Below, one piece after another: positions 2,629 to 57,894 of a stretch of DNA of 64,000 nt. The DNA lies in the sequence record OU343167.1; one strand, 5' to 3'. The notes under the pieces are model-generated. The model searched no databases. It was not told where the DNA came from and saw only the letters and a list, made by a program, of their open reading frames with translations. Numbering within the stretch: position 1 is the stretch's first letter; each line of letters opens with the position of its first letter. The translations under genes were made by a program, and so were the position numbers.

Positions 2629-4395
2629 ATGTCTAATGCTCTCTATGCTGCAACTGCTACTGACTGCTACAAACCCGGTCATGGTGCTCTGTACCCGAAA
2701 GGTACTGAACGTAAATATGCTAACTTCACCCCGCGCTCTGCTAAGCAGTTCCTGCGGTCGAAGTCTTGCTCTGCGTTCTACGATAACAAAGTCGTTAACT
2801 TCGGGTTGCAAGGTACTTGGCACGAACTGGTAGAACTGTGGGATCGCACCTTCTTCAATCTGCCTCGTGAAATTGCCGTCAAACGTGCACAACGTCGTTT
2901 CGACAACATGTGCGGTAAAGGCGTAATCAAACATGAGTGTCTGTACAAACTACATGAACTGGGTTACCTGCCTCTGACTGTACTGGCTATTGATGAAGGT
3001 GAACGTGTTAACATTGGTGTTCCAACTTTCGTAGTTTACAACAGTCTGGATGACGATGATCATTACTGGCTGGTGAACTATCTGGAAACCATCGTTAGTT
3101 CGTACAACTGGAAAATGATTTGCAACGCAACCATCGCTGCTGAATACCAACGTGTATTGAACCATTATGCTGACCGTACTTGCGATAACCGTGAGCACGT
3201 TAAGTTCCAAGCACATGATTTCAGCTTCCGTGGTATGAGTGGCCCTGAAGATGCAATGCGTTCTGGCTCGGCTCACCTGACTAGCTTCGCTGGTACTGAT
3301 ACCATCCCGGCACTTGATTACGCTGAGATGTATTACGGTGCTAATAGCGATACTGAACTGTTGGGTGCTTCGGTTACTGCAACCGAACACGCTGTAGCCA
3401 CTACCAACATCCTGTACCGTTTGCAAATGAAGATCAACTTCCTCAAAGAGGAAGGTACTGTGATCACTCCGGAACTGCATGACAAACTGCGACTGGAAGC
3501 TGAACGTGACTACATTCTGGAGATCATTCTTCAGAAAGTTCCGGAAGGCATCATCTCGCTGGTCTGTGATTCCTTCGACTTCTGGGGTGTTATCTCTGAT
3601 GTTCTCCCGAGCATCCGTGCAGAAATCGAAAGTCGTCTGAAGAATGAACTTGGCCTTGCCAGGGTTGTTGTTCGTCCTGACTCCGGTGATCCGGTTAAAG
3701 TTATTACTGGCTACATGGCTTACCCGACTGAGTTTGCAGATCGCGCTGATTTCGAGAAGCACATCGGTGAACTGGGGTCCATTGAGTTCAGTGGCTACGA
3801 AGTTGTACGTATCGCAGGCGAATACTACGAGATCAATCACATTGCTTCGTCGCTCTCCGATTTCCTGTCTGAAAAGACTATCCCGGAAGTTGAAGTACGT
3901 GGTGCGATTGAAGTCCTGTGGGATTCCTTTGGCGGTACTGTTAACGGTAAAGGCTTCAAATGCCTGAACGAATATGTTGGCCTGATCTATGGCGATTCGA
4001 TTACTGTAGAACGTACCGAGCAGGTCATGTCTCGCTTGGAACGTAAAGGCTACGCCTCTAGTAACGTCGTTCTCGGTATTGGTAGCTACACCTATCAGTA
4101 CAACACTCGCGATACGTTCGGTATGGCCGTTAAAGCCACTGCTGTTCAGATCGAAGAGGAATTCGTAGAGCTGTATAAAGATCCAAAAGCTGCATCTAGT
4201 AAAAAGTCTGCAAAAGGTTTCCTTCGTGTAATTAAAGATGAAGAAGGTAACTTCGTTCTTGAACAAGAAGCCGGCATGTCTTGGGCGACTCTGGAGACAG
4301 AATCCGGCGAATTGAAGCTGTTCTTTAAGAATGGTGAATTCTACAAGAACGACACGATGGCAAAAATCCGGGAACGGATTGCGACCTCTCTGTAA
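2629..4395 (+). CDS. nadV: Nicotinamide phosphoribosyltransferase-like protein (Namat-like, NARP1-type)
   Basis: TDCYKPGH, HDFSFRG, SFAGTDTI, ATEH, VVRPDSGDP, GLIYGDSIT, GIGSYTYQYNTRDTFG, KKSAKG; start moved to ATG 2629 after GAGG. Confidence 0.93.
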   Translation: MSNALYAATATDCYKPGHGALYPKGTERKYANFTPRSAKQFLRSKSCSAFYDNKVVNFGLQGTWHELVELWDRTFFNLPREIAVKRAQRRFDNMCGKGVIKHECLYKLHELGYLPLTVLAIDEGERVNIGVPTFVVYNSLDDDDHYWLVNYLETIVSSYNWKMICNATIAAEYQRVLNHYADRTCDNREHVKFQAHDFSFRGMSGPEDAMRSGSAHLTSFAGTDTIPALDYAEMYYGANSDTELLGASVTATEHAVATTNILYRLQMKINFLKEEGTVITPELHDKLRLEAERDYILEIILQKVPEGIISLVCDSFDFWGVISDVLPSIRAEIESRLKNELGLARVVVRPDSGDPVKVITGYMAYPTEFADRADFEKHIGELGSIEFSGYEVVRIAGEYYEINHIASSLSDFLSEKTIPEVEVRGAIEVLWDSFGGTVNGKGFKCLNEYVGLIYGDSITVERTEQVMSRLERKGYASSNVVLGIGSYTYQYNTRDTFGMAVKATAVQIEEEFVELYKDPKAASSKKSAKGFLRVIKDEEGNFVLEQEAGMSWATLETESGELKLFFKNGEFYKNDTMAKIRERIATSL

Positions 4396-4484: not shown

Positions 4485-4883
4485 ATGTCGAATAAAGACC
4501 GTTTAGATGAAAAGAAAGAATGGCAAGAATCGAACCCAGTTCTCAATGAGTTCTGCTGGACTGTAAGTCGTACCATGGGCGACGTAGCACGTACCAGTGA
4601 CGACCGTACTCCCATTGTCGATATCCCTGCTGGAAAGACCTATGAAATCACTACCAACCAGGAGAACGATATTTATAATGTCGGTCTTGAAACTGGTATG
4701 GTGAACTTCGTTGATCACCTACGCGAGAATGGTTACAAGATCATCTCGCCGGTAAGTGGGCATCCTGTCCCATTTGAGCAAGCTGTAACCTTGGTAAATA
4801 GCACAGAGCAGGTCGTACAAGAACTACCTGGTAAGTCTTTCGTTGAAACCTTCTATGATTATAACTGGGGTGTGAATACATGA
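4485..4883 (+). CDS. hypothetical protein
   Basis: ATG 4485 after GAGG; packed operon. Confidence 0.75.
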   Translation: MSNKDRLDEKKEWQESNPVLNEFCWTVSRTMGDVARTSDDRTPIVDIPAGKTYEITTNQENDIYNVGLETGMVNFVDHLRENGYKIISPVSGHPVPFEQAVTLVNSTEQVVQELPGKSFVETFYDYNWGVNT

Positions 4884-48166: not shown

Positions 48167-48730
48167 TCATTGTATTTGGATTGAAGTCTCATAACCGCCA
48201 GACGTCTTGTACGACCTGAATCTTTTTGGAACTGGTATATCGTAACGACGGCACCATTTTCTAACAGCGTTATCTGATACGCCGTATTTCTTCCCAATTT
48301 TAGTTAATGGTAAAATATGTAGATCGGCAATGAGCTGATCTTTATCGGGTCGCTCCACTTTACGATTACCTTTACCCGTGCATTCAAGGCTACAATAATA
48401 TTCTTGCTCTGTACTAAGTACAGAACCACAACATCTACAAAGTTTAGTGGGGTACTTAGTTGGATCTATACCCATCCTCCGCATCCATGCATGTAATTTA
48501 ACATGCATTGCATCGGGAAGGATTAGTAGATTTTCTGGGTGATTATTGGACCTGTTCTCATCCAAGTGATGTACAACTTCATCGTCATATAAAGGACGAC
48601 CCAATACTTCCTCGGCTACGACTCGATGTTCATAAACCCACCCCCACATATTCTTATTCTTCTTAGCTTCTGGGTGATCCGGCCTATAAAGCAAAATATA
48701 TCCGTTCAGTTCTCTCGAACGCTCTTCCAT
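48167..48730 (-). CDS. HNH homing-endonuclease-like protein (HNH + Zn finger + HTH)
   Basis: YEHRVVAE..VHHLDENRSNNHPENL, CRCC..YCSLEC, KIGKKYGVSDNAVRKWC. Confidence 0.9.
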   Translation of the reverse strand: MEERSRELNGYILLYRPDHPEAKKNKNMWGWVYEHRVVAEEVLGRPLYDDEVVHHLDENRSNNHPENLLILPDAMHVKLHAWMRRMGIDPTKYPTKLCRCCGSVLSTEQEYYCSLECTGKGNRKVERPDKDQLIADLHILPLTKIGKKYGVSDNAVRKWCRRYDIPVPKRFRSYKTSGGYETSIQIQ

Positions 48731-48805: not shown

Positions 48806-48883
<78 letters not shown>

Positions 48884-48949: not shown

Positions 48950-50518
48950 TTATTTTATTTCGTATTCGACTACGGGTGTTGTTTTGGATACATCACCACC
49001 AAATCGATAGACTCCATCGGATACAACTAACATCTCTTCATACGAAGAAATAGCTGGGAAAGTATCTCCGATTAGTTCTGGCTCTTTATTAAGTTGCACC
49101 AAAGCTAATCGTGTTCCGGAGTTATTCGTCACATAGATGTTATTACCGAATATGATTCCTCTATACGTCGAATATTTGTTGGCAGGCGCATTCAAAGGAA
49201 TGACTTCAGTTGTACTAAAATCAGAACTAATCTTTACGTAGTCCGTTGGCGAGATGTTTGTCCCACCTATTGTTAATCTACCTTGAGATGCAACGATAAC
49301 TAATTCACCATTATCGTTAAATCCTAAATTATGATGCCATAATTCAATTGGTAGAACATCAGCAATCATGCCGATTTCATATGTCGTAAGGTTAACTGTT
49401 ATAATGTTCTTATGGATTTTATCACTGCGCCCAGAGAAACCACCAACAATGTACAGTATATCGTCTTTAACTATACTAGCTGTACGTTCGATGTAATATG
49501 CATCGACTAAACCTGGAATAGCAGCTAGCTTTTTAGTTTCCCATGTGTCTGTAGCTATCGTGTAAATATAAATAGTCGGACCAGTAGACAATGGGTTACC
49601 ATGCAAAATCAACTTACCATTATTGTAAACCATATTGGTTGTAGTTGTCTCGCCTTGGAACGGAACTGTAGATGGTAACTTGGTCCATGTTTTAGTATCT
49701 CGGTCTAACCGATGTAAGTCGGACATGAAAGTAGTAGGTCCTGTTGTATATCCACAGGCCATGTAAATATCGTTGTTATCCAAATCATACGCGAGTACTG
49801 GCATCCCACGTTGCGGCGGTGGATTTACAGTCGACAATACAGAGGTAATACCTTTAAGTTCCTTTGGCGGAATATATTCAAGTACCGGTCGCCATCCACG
49901 ATAACTAGTAGCTTCTGTTGGCGGATGACCATCGTAAATATAAAGGCCATTCTTTGCCTGAGGATGAGTTGTCGATGGTGAAAACTGTAGGTAATTACCA
50001 TTGGTATTTCTATTAGCCGCCCAGTTATAACTTCCGTTTCCGGCGCCTATAAGTTGTTCATCTGTGTACTTTGCCCAACTTCCTTTAGTTGTAACATTGC
50101 CAAAAATATCCCACAATTCAGAACCTTCATTACCTTGAGTAGTGATATCCGAATAAGGATTTACTCCAGCATTCATTAGACGAACTTTAAACATATTCCC
50201 ATCGATTACAATAACTTTACTACCATCTATTAAACCAGCCTCGTCAAGTTGGTTTGGACTAATGGAATGGAGAATAGCTGTCTTCGAATAATAAAGAATA
50301 ACATTATTTCTAGATACTTTAATCCAACCAGCATCTGTATTTATAGTACCAATGGAGTCAAGCTCAACAAGTGTTCTTAACTGAGGGTAAGTTATAAACT
50401 TGTCGCTTGTCAACTCACCATACAGACCAAGTGTCGAATCACCTTGTTCAAAGGTAGATGGACCCGGTAGTTTATTTCCTGTAGCCTTAATGAGCGCAGA
50501 CAATAATGATTCGAACAT
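48950..50518 (-). CDS. virion-family domain fused to Kelch-like beta-propeller
   Basis: MFESLL start; GDSTLGLYGEL..FKVRLM..GWRPVLE virion-family domain; C-terminal LYIVGG / IIFGNN repeats. Confidence 0.8.
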   Translation of the reverse strand: MFESLLSALIKATGNKLPGPSTFEQGDSTLGLYGELTSDKFITYPQLRTLVELDSIGTINTDAGWIKVSRNNVILYYSKTAILHSISPNQLDEAGLIDGSKVIVIDGNMFKVRLMNAGVNPYSDITTQGNEGSELWDIFGNVTTKGSWAKYTDEQLIGAGNGSYNWAANRNTNGNYLQFSPSTTHPQAKNGLYIYDGHPPTEATSYRGWRPVLEYIPPKELKGITSVLSTVNPPPQRGMPVLAYDLDNNDIYMACGYTTGPTTFMSDLHRLDRDTKTWTKLPSTVPFQGETTTTNMVYNNGKLILHGNPLSTGPTIYIYTIATDTWETKKLAAIPGLVDAYYIERTASIVKDDILYIVGGFSGRSDKIHKNIITVNLTTYEIGMIADVLPIELWHHNLGFNDNGELVIVASQGRLTIGGTNISPTDYVKISSDFSTTEVIPLNAPANKYSTYRGIIFGNNIYVTNNSGTRLALVQLNKEPELIGDTFPAISSYEEMLVVSDGVYRFGGDVSKTTPVVEYEIK

Positions 50519-50682
50519 AATTTTATCCATTGAAAAGTGACTGTTTACAGAGGGGTGGCTGTATAGAACTTCACGTTCCTACTCCCTTTCCGTCTAAGGC
50601 CTCCCCATTATAGGTACTTACCAAAAGACTAAATCATACAATTTGCAACATAAAGCCCGCCTTTCGGCAGGCCTTATTAAAA

Positions 50683-50793: not shown

Positions 50794-50827
50794 TCTTACA
50801 TATAATCACTATACCAGTATTTCTTTT
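50794..50827 (-). repeat. 34-bp Kelch-to-tRNA junction repeat, copy 1
   Basis: TCTTACATA-N8-ATACCAGTATTTCTTTT (+ strand); second copy at 53704-53737. Confidence 0.85.
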
Positions 50828-51765
50828 CACGGGTTTTCTGGATCGTAAACCCACAGGTCATTATGATAGACACCATTTGTATAACCGCCAGATAAATAAA
50901 TCTTACCGTTATAAACTTCCATATTGGCGTAGAACCGAGTAGGCGGCATCTTACCAGGAGGAAGAATTATATTTGACCATGTGTCAGTTTCAATATCGTA
51001 AACACTGAAAATATGATCGTTATTAATAGTGTTAGGAGTAGAACTTGTACCAGATTGCCCACCGAATACATAGATCTTATTATTAAGAGCTACGGCTGAA
51101 TGTCTGTTCCTATTTACAAGACCATTCTTGTGGGCAGTCCATGTGTTGTTGTCGACATTATAACTTCTGAATGACGTAACTGACGTATTAGCTGTTTCAT
51201 AGCCACCTAACGTGTAGAGGCGTCGACCATGACTTGTTAAAGTCGCATAACGAATTTGATAAGGTGGTGTCAAGTTAGCTACTGTGAAGTTATCGGTATT
51301 ATAGCTCTTAAATTCATACATAATACCTTGTGCACCGTTACCACCAAATAGGTACACCTTATTATCAATAGCTGACATGCAATGACTGTTACGTACGGCC
51401 AATCCACCATTAGAGCGTGTTACAGGTGTAATTGTCTCACCATCAATCGTAAACTCAATCATCGTGTTTGTATCAGCAGAACCAGTGTATCCACCGAATA
51501 CATAAAACTTGTTATCAACTAAACCACCAGCTGCACGTAAATTAACGTTTGCTCCTGCCGGTAGTTCTTTCCATTCGTCTGTTAAGAAATCATAGACGGA
51601 TACAGTATTGAACGCGTTAGTGGTAGCACGTCTACCACCGAAGATATAAAGTTTGTCTCCTACGACAACAGAGGTTGACTGGTTTCTTCCGACGTCGGGT
51701 CCCTGTAGCTGAACCCAACCTTGCTTACTTTTATATTCCCCAATTCCTAACAATGCTTCAAACAT
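50827..51765 (-). CDS. Kelch-repeat beta-propeller protein
   Basis: six repeats such as KLYIFGG..VYDFLTDEW, KFYVFGG, KVYLFGG, RLYTLGG, KIYVFGG, KIYLSGG; MFEALL start. Confidence 0.92.
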   Translation of the reverse strand: MFEALLGIGEYKSKQGWVQLQGPDVGRNQSTSVVVGDKLYIFGGRRATTNAFNTVSVYDFLTDEWKELPAGANVNLRAAGGLVDNKFYVFGGYTGSADTNTMIEFTIDGETITPVTRSNGGLAVRNSHCMSAIDNKVYLFGGNGAQGIMYEFKSYNTDNFTVANLTPPYQIRYATLTSHGRRLYTLGGYETANTSVTSFRSYNVDNNTWTAHKNGLVNRNRHSAVALNNKIYVFGGQSGTSSTPNTINNDHIFSVYDIETDTWSNIILPPGKMPPTRFYANMEVYNGKIYLSGGYTNGVYHNDLWVYDPENP

Positions 51766-53703: not shown

Positions 53704-53737
53704 TCTTACATAGTATTACCATACCAGTATTTCTTTT
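53704..53737 (-). repeat. 34-bp Kelch-to-tRNA junction repeat, copy 2
   Basis: matches 50794-50827 apart from an 8-nt central segment. Confidence 0.85.
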
Positions 53738-55592
53738 ATGGCCTATATGCGTAGAGCTCATTACCTTTCACACCGTTTGGTCTATTACCGCCAGCGATAT
53801 ATAAGGTATCAGCACATGCAGCCATCATAGCAGCATCGCCGTTTATAGGAATGTCGGGGAGTCTTGTCCACGCACCACTGACTGTATCATATTCCCAGAA
53901 ATCATTCAATCCAGTGCTTGGACTAGCGCCGCCACCTATATAAAGTTTATTATCAATCGCAGCTAATAGACAACCTACACGAGCAACAAAGCTGGCGGGT
54001 ACGTTAGATATGGTAGACCATGTACCAGCGACCAAATCAAGAACACGAATGGTTTTAGTCATGGTGTTAGAACTAATCCAACCACAGGCAATGTAAAGTT
54101 TATTATTCACAATAACCATTGCCGCTCTAGCCAATCCTTCTGGAGCAAGTTGGGGTAATTTATACCATTTGCTTCCAGCCGCAGCATCTAAACTATAACG
54201 ATAAATAGCTCTATCGGTGCGTCCATCATCACCAAAAAGATAGGCATATCTACCAAAAGATGTCATGCAGTGGTTTGTTCGCCATGTGGGTGCGTTTGGT
54301 TCAGATATACTGTCACTCCACTTGTCTTCTAGATGGTTATAAGAATACAGATCTGGAGAATAGTTACTACCAGAGAAAATAAGAATCTGGTCAGCGACAG
54401 TTGTGGCTGCCGATTGATAACGTGCAGGAGGTTTAACTGGTCCTTCTTTCCACGTATCTGTAAATACATCGTAAATCAAGTTTGTATTCTTTACTGCACC
54501 ATCACTACCAAACATAACAAACAGTTCTGAATAAGTACTTGCTACGGCTGCTTGCACCCTACCGCCAGGCATGTCTGCTTTTCTTACCCATGTTTTCTCT
54601 GGGACAGGTTCCCAGTTTTCGGGAGCACGAGATACCTTGTAGATTTCTTTTATTTTATTTGTTGTGCTAGTCCAGTTAGTAGAGAATGGTTCAGATGTAC
54701 CACCGACAATATAAATATCATCTTTTAGTCCAATAACACCCGACATGTTTCGATATGATAATCCGGTATCCGATGAGCGTGCCCAAGATTTTTTGACTGG
54801 ATTATAACGATGGAGGTATATTTTGTTACCTTGACCGAGGTTACCCCAGCCGGTATAGTTATAGTAACCTTCATCATCAATAAAACCACCATGCCATACA
54901 TGGTGATATGCAGGGTCCATTGTCTGCCATAATTCCCATTGTTTGGAAATAAGATTAAATCGATGTATTCTTAGGTTCTGATTATTTGCCCATCCACCCA
55001 AACAATAGATATAATCTCCATGTCCAAAAATTGACATACCTGCTAATATCCCACCACCGACATCATCAAAACTTGGTAATCCTGGATAATTTTCAAGAGT
55101 CGCGCCAGTAAGTGGATTTAATTTATAGAATCCGGCTTTATAACTGGGTAAAACATATATGTCCCCTCTATGCTGACATACAGCATTCCCATACGACGTC
55201 TGTGGTAAACGTCCCGTTAACTCAACTGCACTAGTTAACCCAGGTAAATTCAATGCACCTGTCGTTGATAAAAGACCAGCTAAATTAGTAGAAAATTGGC
55301 CGCCTGGTATTAGCATTCTATTATTATAAATAGTTGCTCCATTGATGGAAATAGTTCTAGCATGGTTTCCACCAACAGTCATCGACATATCGGACAGTTT
55401 AAATATTTCAGTTGCAGAGCGGATAGCTCCAGTAGAATCTTGACCGCCAACTACATATAAGTTATCGTTATCCATCGCAACGATTGGACCTGCAATACCC
55501 ACTGGAAGGTCAGCTACCTTCTTGGTTCGCATATAAAAGGGTACATATGGAGCTCTCTCCATTGCACCAGAACTGAGTAATATCTCGAACAT
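53736..55592 (-). CDS. double Kelch beta-propeller protein
   Basis: about 12 GG-containing repeats (LYVVGG, YCLGG, IYIVGG, LYIACG, LYIGGG, LYIAGG); MFEILL start. Confidence 0.9.
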   Translation of the reverse strand: MFEILLSSGAMERAPYVPFYMRTKKVADLPVGIAGPIVAMDNDNLYVVGGQDSTGAIRSATEIFKLSDMSMTVGGNHARTISINGATIYNNRMLIPGGQFSTNLAGLLSTTGALNLPGLTSAVELTGRLPQTSYGNAVCQHRGDIYVLPSYKAGFYKLNPLTGATLENYPGLPSFDDVGGGILAGMSIFGHGDYIYCLGGWANNQNLRIHRFNLISKQWELWQTMDPAYHHVWHGGFIDDEGYYNYTGWGNLGQGNKIYLHRYNPVKKSWARSSDTGLSYRNMSGVIGLKDDIYIVGGTSEPFSTNWTSTTNKIKEIYKVSRAPENWEPVPEKTWVRKADMPGGRVQAAVASTYSELFVMFGSDGAVKNTNLIYDVFTDTWKEGPVKPPARYQSAATTVADQILIFSGSNYSPDLYSYNHLEDKWSDSISEPNAPTWRTNHCMTSFGRYAYLFGDDGRTDRAIYRYSLDAAAGSKWYKLPQLAPEGLARAAMVIVNNKLYIACGWISSNTMTKTIRVLDLVAGTWSTISNVPASFVARVGCLLAAIDNKLYIGGGASPSTGLNDFWEYDTVSGAWTRLPDIPINGDAAMMAACADTLYIAGGNRPNGVKGNELYAYRP

Positions 55593-55676
55593 GTACGTGC
55601 TCTCAGTTAGTATTAATGATTCATAAGATAACCACTAACGGCATAAAAGAGTAACCAATGGCTACTCATTTGAATT

Positions 55677-55711
55677 TGGCACCGCGACCTGGACTCGAAC
55701 CAGGGACCCAG
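55677..55711 (-). pseudogene. 3' half of disrupted canonical tRNA-Asn
   Basis: CT-GGGTC-CCTGG-TTCGAGT-CCAGG-TCGCGGT-G-CCA: positions ~42-76, acceptor complementary to the 5' half at 56459-56492. Confidence 0.88.
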
Positions 55712-55721
55712 TATATTTTTT

Positions 55722-56279
55722 TTATTGTGTGGGGACCAAGGTGCTAATACCCCCATTAGCACCGACCCTAATAAACCTAGCCGGAATATTGATCTTGTAT
55801 GCTCGGCACCATTTACGAATTGCGTTATCGGATACTCCATACTTCTCTCCTATTTTTACAAGTGATAGCAATGTAACATCGAGGGCAAGTTGTTCTTTGG
55901 ATGGTCGTTCCACCTTACGACGACCTTTGGCTGAACACTCGGGGCTACAGAATGTTATCAGTCGGTGACTAATGACAATACCACAGCCAGCACAAAGCTT
56001 AGTTGGATAGTTCCTAGGATCAATACCGAGCCGTTTCATCCAACCATGTAACTTCATGTGTTGTGACTGAGGGAGAATCAATAAGTTCTCTGGATGGTTG
56101 TTAAGCTTATTCTCATCCAGATGATGAACTTCCTCGTCATCGTAAAGTGGTCTACCTAATGTGTCTTCTCCAACCACTCGATGTTCGTAAACCCATCCAA
56201 ACATTTTAGGGTTAGCTATGGCTTGACGATGTTCGGGTAAATATAATGCCCTATAGCCGTTAATTATTTTCTCTTTCAT
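55722..56279 (-). CDS. HNH homing-endonuclease-like protein (paralog of 48167-48730)
   Basis: YEHRVVGE..VHHLDENKLNNHPENL, CAGC..FCSPEC, KIGEKYGVSDNAIRKWC. Confidence 0.9.
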   Translation of the reverse strand: MKEKIINGYRALYLPEHRQAIANPKMFGWVYEHRVVGEDTLGRPLYDDEEVHHLDENKLNNHPENLLILPQSQHMKLHGWMKRLGIDPRNYPTKLCAGCGIVISHRLITFCSPECSAKGRRKVERPSKEQLALDVTLLSLVKIGEKYGVSDNAIRKWCRAYKINIPARFIRVGANGGISTLVPTQ

Positions 56280-56360
56280 ATCGAACCTAGGATATATAAA
56301 TAGATCGCTAGTTCGATCTATGTGACGGAATAAAGAGTAGCCGGAGCTACTCTTTGAAAT

Positions 56361-56447
56361 TGGCTGGTAAGGTAGGATTCGAACCTACGATGGGCTTTCG
56401 CCAACGGATTAACAGTCCGCCCCCTGCTACCGCTCGGGTACTTACCA
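56361..56447 (-). tRNA. tRNA-Asn(GTT) with long variable arm (type II body)
   Basis: TGGTAAG/CTTACCA acceptor, G73, GCGGA-CT GTT AA-TCCGT, variable arm GGC-GAAA-GCC, TTCGAAT, CCA; 87 nt. Confidence 0.9.
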
Positions 56448-56458
56448 AGAAAACTATC

Positions 56459-56492
56459 CAGTCGCTTGCTCTACCGACTGAGCTATCGCGGA
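56459..56492 (-). pseudogene. 5' half of disrupted canonical tRNA-Asn
   Basis: TCCGCGA-TA-GCTC-AGTCGGTA-GAGC-A-AGCGA-CT-G: positions 1-34 of a proteobacterial-type tRNA-Asn. Confidence 0.88.
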
Positions 56493-56641
56493 AGAATTAC
56501 TAACAACTTCTTTCTTGTAGAAAAATCACAAGTAACTGAATTACAGTATTTCACTACATATTATTACAATCTGAGTATTATTTATTTTTTATGACATTAT
56601 GTAAATAACGTGTAGTTAACCTTATTATAAATATTATTATT

Positions 56642-57649
56642 TTAATCAATGGCTAATGGTGCTAGTTTTACCTGATAGATACCCGATAACAATTGGCTTT
56701 TTAACATATATGCTCCACCACCAACTGGCATTTTAGATCCACCTGCAATGATCATGCTATTATCTGGACCTTTGGCTATAGATGAAATATTAAGGAATCC
56801 AATACCTAGTTCAAATGGTTCAGCCCATTTCCGGCGCCTAATATTAAAACGCTGTGCAAACATTTTAGTTACACCGCCGACATCAACTGCATTAAGGTAA
56901 TTAAAATATTCCCCATCTACATAACCATTACCTTGCCATATTGTTGCTTTGTCAGCAGGTATTATTAGCCATGGTGTTAGTTCCCATACAAGTGTAGTAA
57001 CATTGTATCTATAGACTTCTAAGTTTGGTATGTTCTTAGTATTATCCCAGCCACCAAAATGGTAGAAATAACCATTATAATAAAATAATTGTTGACCTGA
57101 CCTAGGTCCACCGCTATAGGCTTGACCGCCGAGCCAGTTCTTAGTCGATGGTTTTAATCGCATGGCGTTTGTACCAACTGGATTAACACACATAATAAGA
57201 TCATTGCCATCAGACGCTGACGCAGTTCCCCATAATGCACCAGGACCACTATAACGCTCAACGCGACTACCTGTGCTTATATCAAAATGTTGTATAAAGT
57301 TAGAAGTACCTGTACCCCCATCACCTGCTGCGTTCCATCCAGTAATACCACCATAAACAATAAAGTTATTTTTATGTAATGTACCAAATCCAAGTGATAC
57401 ACCCGGTAAAAATGTACCAGATGCTGTTGCGCTTATCTCTGCAAATGGGTTTATAGTGAACCGTCTGAAAACAGTTGCTGCTGATTGTCCTTCCGTATGA
57501 TGTCCGGATCCAACATATAACGTATTTCCATCTACGTACGACATCGTACCTGCCAATGCTACCGGTAGGTCACCTAATTTTATAATTTCACTAAATCCAA
57601 CCAAGGGTGTTTCATCGCCTAAACCTGATGATAATAGTAATTCAAACAT
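56642..57649 (-). CDS. Kelch-repeat beta-propeller protein
   Basis: LYVGSG, FIVYGG, FYHFGGW..YRYNVTTLVW, MIIAGG; MFELLL start. Confidence 0.88.
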   Translation of the reverse strand: MFELLLSSGLGDETPLVGFSEIIKLGDLPVALAGTMSYVDGNTLYVGSGHHTEGQSAATVFRRFTINPFAEISATASGTFLPGVSLGFGTLHKNNFIVYGGITGWNAAGDGGTGTSNFIQHFDISTGSRVERYSGPGALWGTASASDGNDLIMCVNPVGTNAMRLKPSTKNWLGGQAYSGGPRSGQQLFYYNGYFYHFGGWDNTKNIPNLEVYRYNVTTLVWELTPWLIIPADKATIWQGNGYVDGEYFNYLNAVDVGGVTKMFAQRFNIRRRKWAEPFELGIGFLNISSIAKGPDNSMIIAGGSKMPVGGGAYMLKSQLLSGIYQVKLAPLAID

Positions 57650-57850: not shown

Positions 57851-57894
57851 TAATTCATTATCTACATATTAGTATACATAGGGCTCTTATGACA

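Follow-up and report, generated by a model that had tools for sequence, protein, structure and literature searches.

Homing endonuclease genes normally spare the genomes of their hosts by residing in self-splicing introns or inteins, or by being placed between genes. In Aeromonas phage Aeh1, the intron-less endonuclease gene mobE lies inside a functional gene, nrdA, and the resulting protein fragments reassemble. Integrase-borne islands and prophages use tRNA genes as insertion sites and make them whole again with a copy of the 3' end that they bring along, and "cleave-and-rescue" or "home-and-rescue" drives pair a nuclease aimed at a useful gene with a linked, recoded copy that the nuclease would not recognize. 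In phage T4, the endonuclease SegB, which has its preferred cleavage site inside the T2L tRNA-Asn gene, drives the inheritance of its own tRNA region (PMC2330249). Here we analyze a stretch of 64,000 nucleotides from sequence record OU343167.1 (the window), in which a canonical, short-arm tRNA-Asn gene is broken by a 747-bp insert carrying a second, differently built tRNA-Asn gene together with a free-standing HNH endonuclease gene. We consider it likely, with a probability of about 0.6, that this insert is an intron-less homing cassette with a linked substitute tRNA-Asn.

T4 SegB is the closest precedent. Its gene is likewise free-standing, intron-less, and located within a phage tRNA cluster, its target lies within a tRNA-Asn gene that a related phage carries, and its homing brings in the endonuclease gene with adjacent tRNA genes while excluding the tRNA genes of the recipient (PMC2330249). 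SegB, however, is a GIY-YIG enzyme that recognizes the T-arm end of tRNA genes and is encoded between genes, whereas the nuclease considered here contains an HNH_3 domain and its cassette is embedded in the target gene, of which the two halves remain as scars, and brings along an isoacceptor of the disrupted tRNA. Domain and phrog scans of this nuclease found HNH_3 only and no GIY-YIG domain; it may work in the manner of SegB without belonging to the SegB family. The locus also differs from nrdA of Aeh1 in that the split gene is dead and its function is provided by a separate cargo gene. As with integrase-borne islands, a mobile element targets a tRNA gene and offsets the damage with carried tRNA sequence. 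In contrast to such islands, the cassette has no integrase of the tyrosine or serine recombinase type, its single open reading frame (ORF) being the HNH gene, contains no repeat of the tRNA 3' end, and supplies a complete tRNA of divergent sequence where islands supply a matching 3' segment. The logic is that of "cleave-and-rescue" designs, although those are engineered, RNA-guided, and deployed in animals, while the present element is natural, protein-guided, and carried by a phage, with a nuclease aim and a rescue immunity that we infer. The literature that we searched holds no description of this element or arrangement, nor any mention of PHIKZ296; what is new, among intron-less homing systems, is insertion within the target gene combined with a linked substitute gene.

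A canonical tRNA-Asn gene interrupted by a discrete cassette

The broken gene occupies positions 55677..56492 on the minus strand, within the tRNA cluster of a phiKZ-like jumbo phage. The region around it is 100% identical to that of the Pseudomonas phage vB_PaeM_phiLBG22 (phiLBG22), 97-99% identical to those of phiHQ, PA1C, and BRkr, and 84-90% identical to those of phiKZ and its close relatives. The initial annotation of the window, made from its letters alone, had described a split tRNA-Asn with pairing acceptor strands and, in the insert, a complete long-arm tRNA-Asn(GTT) followed by an HNH/zinc-finger/helix-turn-helix nuclease. Both tRNA pieces are present as quoted, at 56459-56492 and 55677-55711 on the minus strand, separated by the 747 bp between 55712 and 56458, and the two genes of the insert are borne out by ARAGORN, Rfam, Pfam HNH_3, and an AlphaFold2 (AF2) model. 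When each piece was aligned separately to the intact 76-nt tRNA-Asn of relatives, the 5' piece (34 nt) matched at 94% and the 3' piece (35-36 nt) at 89-92%, in both cases to one and the same gene. The acceptor strands of the two pieces pair with each other, and one pair is changed on both sides relative to the Phikzvirus gene; this compensatory change shows that both derive from a single, formerly functional gene of the window lineage, not from different tRNA families, a possibility that the annotation had considered. Intact orthologues lie at 3686-3761 of locus L003 and 4627-4702 of locus L019.

Relative to the intact gene of PA7, the window allele amounts to one insertion, a small loss of nucleotides at the junction, and four substitutions, one of which unpairs an acceptor-stem position and is absent from PA1C. 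The initial annotation had noted missing nucleotides in the anticodon loop and stem. The loss itself is real in the window allele, but judging from the allele of the phiKZ group, which lost no nucleotide, it is secondary decay of the window lineage. The layout of 5' half, isoacceptor tRNA, HNH gene, and 3' half, which the annotation proposed seeking elsewhere, was found in 14 independent genome records, so that a chance origin is excluded.

The cassette (55712..56458, minus strand), which is absent from uninterrupted alleles, consists of a linker, the long-arm tRNA-Asn gene (56361..56447), two hairpins, the HNH ORF (55722..56279), and a short tail. It is 99-100% identical in phiHQ, PA1C, and BRkr, 84% identical in the phiKZ group, and 68% identical in phage Psa21. 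The first hairpin (56334..56353), recognized by reading the sequence, directly follows the long-arm tRNA gene and resembles the hairpins that follow canonical tRNA genes of the cluster; its homologues are present in related cassette and tRNA loci. A second, terminator-like hairpin (56300..56321) lies upstream of the HNH start, and the HNH ORF stands alone between hairpins. The terminator-like hairpin native to the canonical tRNA gene (55649..55667, minus strand) is now located downstream of the entire cassette. An AT-rich promoter-like motif, TAHTAHTATGTA, is found upstream of the broken gene (56555..56566, minus strand); from it, the 5' piece, the long-arm tRNA gene, and the HNH gene are probably transcribed.

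Immediately 5' of the HNH start codon is AGGTTCGAT, a conserved motif resembling a tRNA T arm (window, 56280-56292; L001, about 2923-2934). It is also seen in L010 and L012 (about 2489-2500), and TTCGAAC occurs nearby in Psa21, L009, and L013; the motif might serve as an operator or mimic the target, or might be left over from a tRNA. Another T-arm-like match, at 4526-4536, falls inside a coding region and was dismissed as chance.

Empty, filled, and partial alleles

Two sites were distinguished in the genomes of relatives, site B being located downstream of the PHIKZ298/297 homologues and site A next to tRNA-Asp. The upstream flank of the broken window gene is orthologous to the site B flank of phiKZ; its downstream flank resembles that of site A. 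An uninterrupted 76-nt tRNA-Asn gene occupies site B in fMGyn-Pae01, and in 23-24 records in all, so that the contiguous canonical gene for which the annotation proposed searching relatives does exist at the orthologous site, in about 24 Phikzvirus genomes. In phiKZ and nine similar records, the site B gene is interrupted by the same cassette with no gene nucleotide lost. As far as the gene itself, 0-1 differences in each 100 bp separate the flanks of phiKZ from those of PA7 (about 1 kb compared on the left side, 1.4 kb on the right side). The two phages are near-isogenic at site B, except that a stretch of about 0.8 kb is cleanly present in one and absent from the other. The tRNA pieces differ at 1 and 3 positions between phiKZ and PA7, exceeding the flanks, which would fit either decay or a very short co-converted tract. 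In this comparison, no co-conversion tracts are seen around site B beyond the tRNA pieces themselves, and gain and precise loss of the cassette between phiKZ and PA7 are therefore indistinguishable.

The canonical tRNA-Asn gene at site A of phiKZ-type genomes is identical to the site B gene of PA7. Site A has itself been invaded in fMGyn-Pae01, Churi, HUST_1, T2P, U1B, U5, phi9_PA9, and OMKO1, where it holds the 5' piece, the same linker as at site B of phiKZ, and the long-arm tRNA gene. The native site A hairpin follows directly after the long-arm tRNA, the HNH gene and the 3' piece being absent, and the right-hand joint falls where the cassette hairpin region and the native downstream region are alike. 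Such an allele is the outcome that might be expected if a break at site A had been repaired from the site B cassette, with early resolution. These alleles also show that the tRNA part can spread without the nuclease.

Taken by genome, two canonical genes and no cassette are present in about 18 phages (including PA7, SL2, and PA02), and a single canonical gene is present in six (including KTN4 and fnug). Six phages combine a canonical gene at site A with the cassette at site B (phiKZ, Brmt, NK1, 6B, 9-Ps-8B, and 9Ps-7B), and two have the cassette at site B only (124.01 and 2PS). The long-arm tRNA at site A is accompanied by a canonical gene at site B in three phages (fMGyn-Pae01, Churi, and HUST_1) and is the only tRNA-Asn gene in five (T2P, U1B, U5, phi9_PA9, and OMKO1). 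Decayed scars and a full-length HNH gene characterize the window group of four (phiLBG22, phiHQ, PA1C, and BRkr), in whose genomes no intact canonical tRNA-Asn gene was found. Every genome surveyed keeps at least one tRNA-Asn gene, canonical or long-arm.

The long-arm tRNA-Asn

ARAGORN calls the 87-nt gene of the cassette as a tRNA-Asn(GTT) with an extra arm, its score with the Rfam tRNA model is 54.2 bits, and CCA is encoded. In an alignment of 14 members of the long-arm family, 95.6% of cells are paired (72% in shuffles), compensatory or both-side changes are seen in 18 of the 23 pairs, and all three pairs of the extra arm covary. All Asn members of the family possess the GUU anticodon and G73. 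The first base pair is U1-A72 in all members from Pseudomonas phages, including the window copy, and G1-C72 in those from enterobacterial phages. To our knowledge, P. aeruginosa has no asparaginyl-tRNA synthetase (AsnRS) and makes Asn-tRNA by the indirect route. The GUU anticodon (G34, U35, U36) and G73 are the bacterial Asn identity determinants, and U1-A72 is the determinant for the amidation of Asp-tRNA(Asn) in the transamidation route (PMC9976931). If P. aeruginosa does take this route, U1-A72 would suit its requirement. The comparative evidence indicates that the long-arm tRNA is a genuine, conserved tRNA with Asn identity elements. It is presumably charged with Asn; charging with Ser may also occur, though the extra arm is short.

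The long-arm gene and the canonical target share only an identical 11-nt core around the anticodon, their stems being different; the long-arm gene may be immune to the HNH endonuclease, with the shared core as a caveat. Pairwise identities of the long-arm tRNA to tRNA-Tyr, tRNA-Ser, tRNA-Leu, and canonical tRNA-Asn all lie between 55 and 72%, and this uniformity means that no parent tRNA can be named. Its closest relative is a long-arm tRNA(CUU) (Lys) of Caulobacter phage CcrColossus (L022, 1500-1589; 78% identity), implying that class-II-like architecture in phage tRNAs extends beyond Asn.

Long-arm tRNA-Asn genes without this HNH gene are present in T5-like Epseptimavirus, as the initial annotation had noted, in Proteus phage Stubb, Erwinia phage Vettismorki, and Pseudomonas phage Y1-MI, and on three IMG/VR contigs (L030, L031, and L033). 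The family spans the unrelated groups Demerecviridae, Straboviridae, and phiKZ-like phages. The version in T5-like and other phages, whose annotation reads tRNA-Asn and nothing more, shares the cloverleaf, a 3-4 bp extra arm with a GAAA-type loop, GUU, and G73; it differs in being an ordinary member of its tRNA cluster, with neither an adjacent homologue of this HNH gene nor tRNA remnants, and in having G1-C72 where Pseudomonas phages have U1-A72.

The HNH endonuclease and its paralogue

The HNH gene is a full-length, unbroken ORF of 185 amino acids (aa) whose product comprises an N-terminal HNH_3 domain, a four-cysteine zinc ribbon, and a C-terminal three-helix module resembling a helix-turn-helix. 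The Pfam HNH_3 model matches with 41.2 bits against a cut-off of 24.8 (E 1.3e-10), and the protein is assigned to phrog_15471 (1e-52). Among 55 homologues, H52, H53, N61, N65, H74, C96, C99, and C111 are invariant, and C115 is present in at least 90%. The alignment-based AF2 model has a predicted local distance difference test (pLDDT) score of 93; a single-sequence AlphaFold model (pLDDT 34) was unusable. Sequence searches of the PDB gave no hit to any solved structure, and a fold search of the PDB with the AF2 model gave no significant match, the first-ranked entry being I-HmuI (1u3e; E 0.23, template modeling score (TM) 0.30). Even so, the order of parts is that of I-HmuI, in which an N-terminal HNH motif is followed by extended DNA-binding modules ending in a helix-turn-helix; I-HmuI, however, is intron-encoded, and the present HNH gene lies outside any intron.

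Between the window and phiKZ, the ratio of nonsynonymous to synonymous change (dN/dS) in the HNH gene is about 0.06, which denotes strong purifying selection and argues that the protein is kept functional. The phiKZ-group copy contains one frameshift and is annotated at 160 aa, while that of the window group is full length.

A second cassette of the same kind is located elsewhere in the window, on the minus strand, and consists of tRNA-Thr(UGU) (48806-48883), a hairpin, and an HNH paralogue (48167-48730) of 187 aa that is 60% identical to the first and also matches HNH_3. In phiHQ and PA1C, the place of this paralogue is taken by a tRNA-Asp(GUC) gene with its hairpin; the paralogue is present only in phiLBG22 and BRkr, and no tRNA-Asp gene was found in the window. 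Displacement of a tRNA gene by a second HNH gene would count in favor of homing. A metagenome homologue of the paralogue (L016) also follows tRNA-Thr(UGU).

Deeper relatives and re-assorted cargo

Psa21 and six loci from metagenomes or IMG/VR (L009-L014) encode homologues of the HNH protein with 58-76% identity, and in each of them a long-arm tRNA-Asn gene precedes the HNH gene by about 70-85 nt; a scan of IMG/VR with the HNH alignment returned Psa21 and one 310-kb contig only, and look-ups in the protein database and of contigs yielded more. In L013 (GCA_040383985.1), both canonical tRNA-Asn pieces of that lineage's own gene flank the cassette, with their own compensatory acceptor pairs, as in the window. 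The 5' piece is kept in L012 and Psa21, and a decayed 3' piece directly follows the HNH gene in L015. Two very different cargo tRNAs are found in these loci. Variant 1 is the window type, and variant 2 has an acceptor stem and T arm near the canonical ones but a rewritten D arm, anticodon stem, and extra arm. In a matrix of pairwise HNH identities, from which the L009 protein was left out, L010 and L012, which carry variants 2 and 1, respectively, form one of the closest pairs (84%), and the other unites Psa21, a carrier of variant 1, and L013, a carrier of variant 2 (76%). That the closest nucleases carry different variants implies that cargo and nuclease have been re-assorted. At 40-50% identity, the homologues are ordinary free-standing endonuclease genes, some within tRNA clusters and some not.

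In Psa21-like contigs, odd, tRNA-like, and highly structured non-coding stretches lie on the upstream or downstream side of the cassettes (L013, 1961-2036; L005, about 1900-2430; L009, about 1890-2300; L014, about 3060-3320). Rfam finds no intron in these stretches. In L013, ARAGORN reports a tRNA whose anticodon has four bases (actg); its tRNA-Gly(acc) call in Psa21 is doubtful.

The surrounding tRNA cluster

ARAGORN identifies seven tRNA genes in the window, all on the minus strand and interspersed with paralogous Kelch-repeat genes. Of the codons in the long ORFs of the window, 5.5% specify Asn. Four of the Kelch-repeat genes (PHIKZ298-like) alternate with tRNA genes on the minus strand, at 48950-50530, 50827-51765, 53736-55592, and 56642-57649. 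Their leaders and first codons are similar, as are the hairpins 3' of the tRNA genes, and homology repeated in this way might encourage ectopic exchange from one tRNA site to another.

Exactly three copies of the AT-rich motif TAHTAHTATGTA are present on the minus strand of the window (0.18 copies expected), all of them immediately upstream of a tRNA unit: 5' of tRNA-Tyr (53707-53718), of the broken tRNA-Asn, and of tRNA-Met (57863-57874). Similar motifs precede tRNA units in Psa21, L009, L013, L014, and L031. Early promoters of phiKZ are AT-rich (PMC10914365), and the motif is likely to be a phage promoter.

The window lacks PHIKZ297 (L001, 2044-2556), the gene found just upstream of site B in Phikzvirus, and only a remnant of the 3' end of this gene is retained in PA1C (L004, about 1900-1960). 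An extra ORF of 218 aa with unknown function directly follows the hairpin after the 3' piece in PA1C (L004, 3019-3675) and BRkr (L002, 2753-3409) but is missing from the window and phiHQ.

Discussion

Comparison among relatives establishes, at the level of sequence, that the insertion struck an intact gene, that the cassette is modular and polymorphic in its presence, that a second site has been invaded, that cargo has been re-assorted, that the HNH gene is conserved, and that the substitute tRNA is valid. If the element homes, the HNH endonuclease would most likely recognize, and cut or nick, the anticodon arm of canonical tRNA-Asn genes in cassette-free phage genomes. Repair would then copy the cassette from a carrier genome, with the halves of the tRNA gene serving as homology arms. 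The target gene would be destroyed in this process and the cassette would supply a differently built tRNA-Asn, with a long extra arm and different stems, and because its anticodon, G73, and U1-A72 are the same, the phage would retain a tRNA-Asn. The cassette shows no obvious promoter and lies behind the AT-rich motif of the target, from which it is probably transcribed; the 5' piece would accordingly be a transcribed leader that is removed during processing of the long-arm tRNA. The resemblance of the hairpin after the long-arm tRNA to those after canonical tRNA genes suggests that repair may resolve there, copying the tRNA without the HNH gene and giving rise to site A alleles.

Several observations weigh against this proposal. 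In six phages of the phiKZ group, the cassette is accompanied at the other site by an intact canonical gene that has the sequence of the PA7 target, a coexistence that would fit homing only if the frameshifted HNH protein is inactive or weak, or if recognition reaches outside the gene. It may represent a degenerating stage of the homing cycle, seen in two lineages only. In addition, the long-arm tRNA occurs with no HNH gene nearby in T5-like phages, Y1-MI, L030, L031, and L033, distant HNH homologues (40-45% identity) are often located away from tRNA genes, and the fold search links the modeled nuclease to I-HmuI at E = 0.23 only, with no significant match. The specificity of the HNH protein is deduced from the position of the cassette alone. 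Finally, the proportion of synonymous differences (pS) between window and phiKZ is 0.56 for the HNH gene and 0.34-0.43 for neighboring genes (0.87 for one of them), values of the same order that are compatible with long vertical co-descent and occasional allele replacement by recombination. The tRNA-swapping homing element put forward in the initial annotation is partly supported. The insertion, the discrete and recurring unit, the polymorphism, and the copying of the tRNA to a second site speak for it, but the six phages with both cassette and intact target speak against its simple version.

A more far-reaching form of the homing proposal, which we regard as possible and advance only tentatively, is that the element acts as a natural viral "cleave-and-rescue" drive. 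The HNH endonuclease would destroy canonical tRNA-Asn genes in rival phiKZ-like phages and at its own paralogous sites, and the long-arm tRNA would be a recoded rescue that is immune at the DNA level and that its unusual architecture, also seen in T5-like phages, would protect from a host factor acting on tRNA-Asn. In that case, the discord between HNH tree and cargo type would mean that the nuclease has repeatedly acquired new rescue tRNAs.

Among the alternatives to homing, the one that survives best is an old, one-off insertion by illegitimate recombination, made without targeting and brought to its present distribution, empty alleles and site A copies included, by ordinary recombination among co-infecting phiKZ-like phages and paralogous tRNA-Asn sites, with an HNH protein that cuts elsewhere or nothing at all. 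Much of what troubles the homing proposal would be expected under this explanation: a cassette divergence akin to that of neighboring genes, the presence of cassette and intact canonical gene together in six phiKZ-group phages, and distant HNH relatives that are not linked to tRNA genes. The location of the tRNA genes amid Kelch-repeat paralogues with similar hairpins and leaders would, moreover, favor ectopic recombination. We nevertheless think it unlikely, because strong purifying selection on the HNH gene persists, remnants of tRNA-Asn accompany this HNH clade in several lineages of deep divergence, between them carrying two kinds of cargo tRNA, and the same left junction is found in two separate canonical genes. 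Furthermore, the HNH paralogue has displaced another tRNA gene, and the SegB precedent shows that such targeting exists.

Selection might instead act at the level of RNA, the long-arm tRNA-Asn resisting a tRNA-cleaving host defense, or some other tRNA-directed factor, to the benefit of phages in which it replaces the canonical gene, with the HNH gene as passenger or vehicle. Phage tRNAs are known to neutralize tRNA-cleaving defenses (PMC11555353; PMC11464382; PMC13096335), the long-arm family is found across unrelated phage groups, and the long-arm tRNA reached site A without the HNH gene. On the other hand, we identified no Asn-specific Pseudomonas nuclease in this analysis, about 24 Phikzvirus genomes thrive with canonical genes only, and in the one test that we found, a T5-like phage tRNA-Asn gave no rescue from PrrC170 (PMC11555353). 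As the explanation for the cassette, such selection seems improbable to us; it is, however, compatible with homing and does not exclude it, and a role for the swap against host anticodon nucleases, as suggested in the initial annotation, is speculative.

The insert could be taken for an intron, either group I or protein-spliced, from which canonical tRNA-Asn is still made by splicing, with the long-arm "tRNA" as intron structure, given that the phiKZ-group allele has lost no gene nucleotide, that the anticodon arm is a known seat of tRNA introns, and that HNH genes are frequent inside group I introns (PMC12908238). This explanation has very little chance of being correct, since tRNAs are all that permissive Rfam scans detect in the window, phiKZ, Psa21, and eight additional loci (Intron_gpI gives no hit, the E-value limit being 1 for the window, 0.01 for phiKZ and four loci, and 0.1 for five more loci), the window-group allele is short of nucleotides and could not yield a tRNA, site A alleles lack the 3' piece entirely, and the long-arm tRNA stands as an independent gene in many phages, with full covariation support.

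In the homing cassette that we favor, a free-standing endonuclease gene is lodged within another gene, and the harm appears to be made good by a second copy of the lost function that is encoded separately and built differently. Such compensation would be a third solution to sparing the host genome, previously known only from engineered gene drives, and phiKZ, the model among nucleus-forming jumbo phages, is itself a carrier of the cassette. The series of alleles among its relatives, from naive through invaded and decayed to tRNA-only, records the life cycle of such an element, and if the drive interpretation is true, the element would be selfish and useful at once. The long-arm phage tRNA-Asn constitutes a widespread and apparently undescribed class that bears on the rules of tRNA identity, above all for Pseudomonas and other hosts in which Asn-tRNA is made by an indirect route, and is relevant to the current interest in phage tRNAs as agents of counter-defense.

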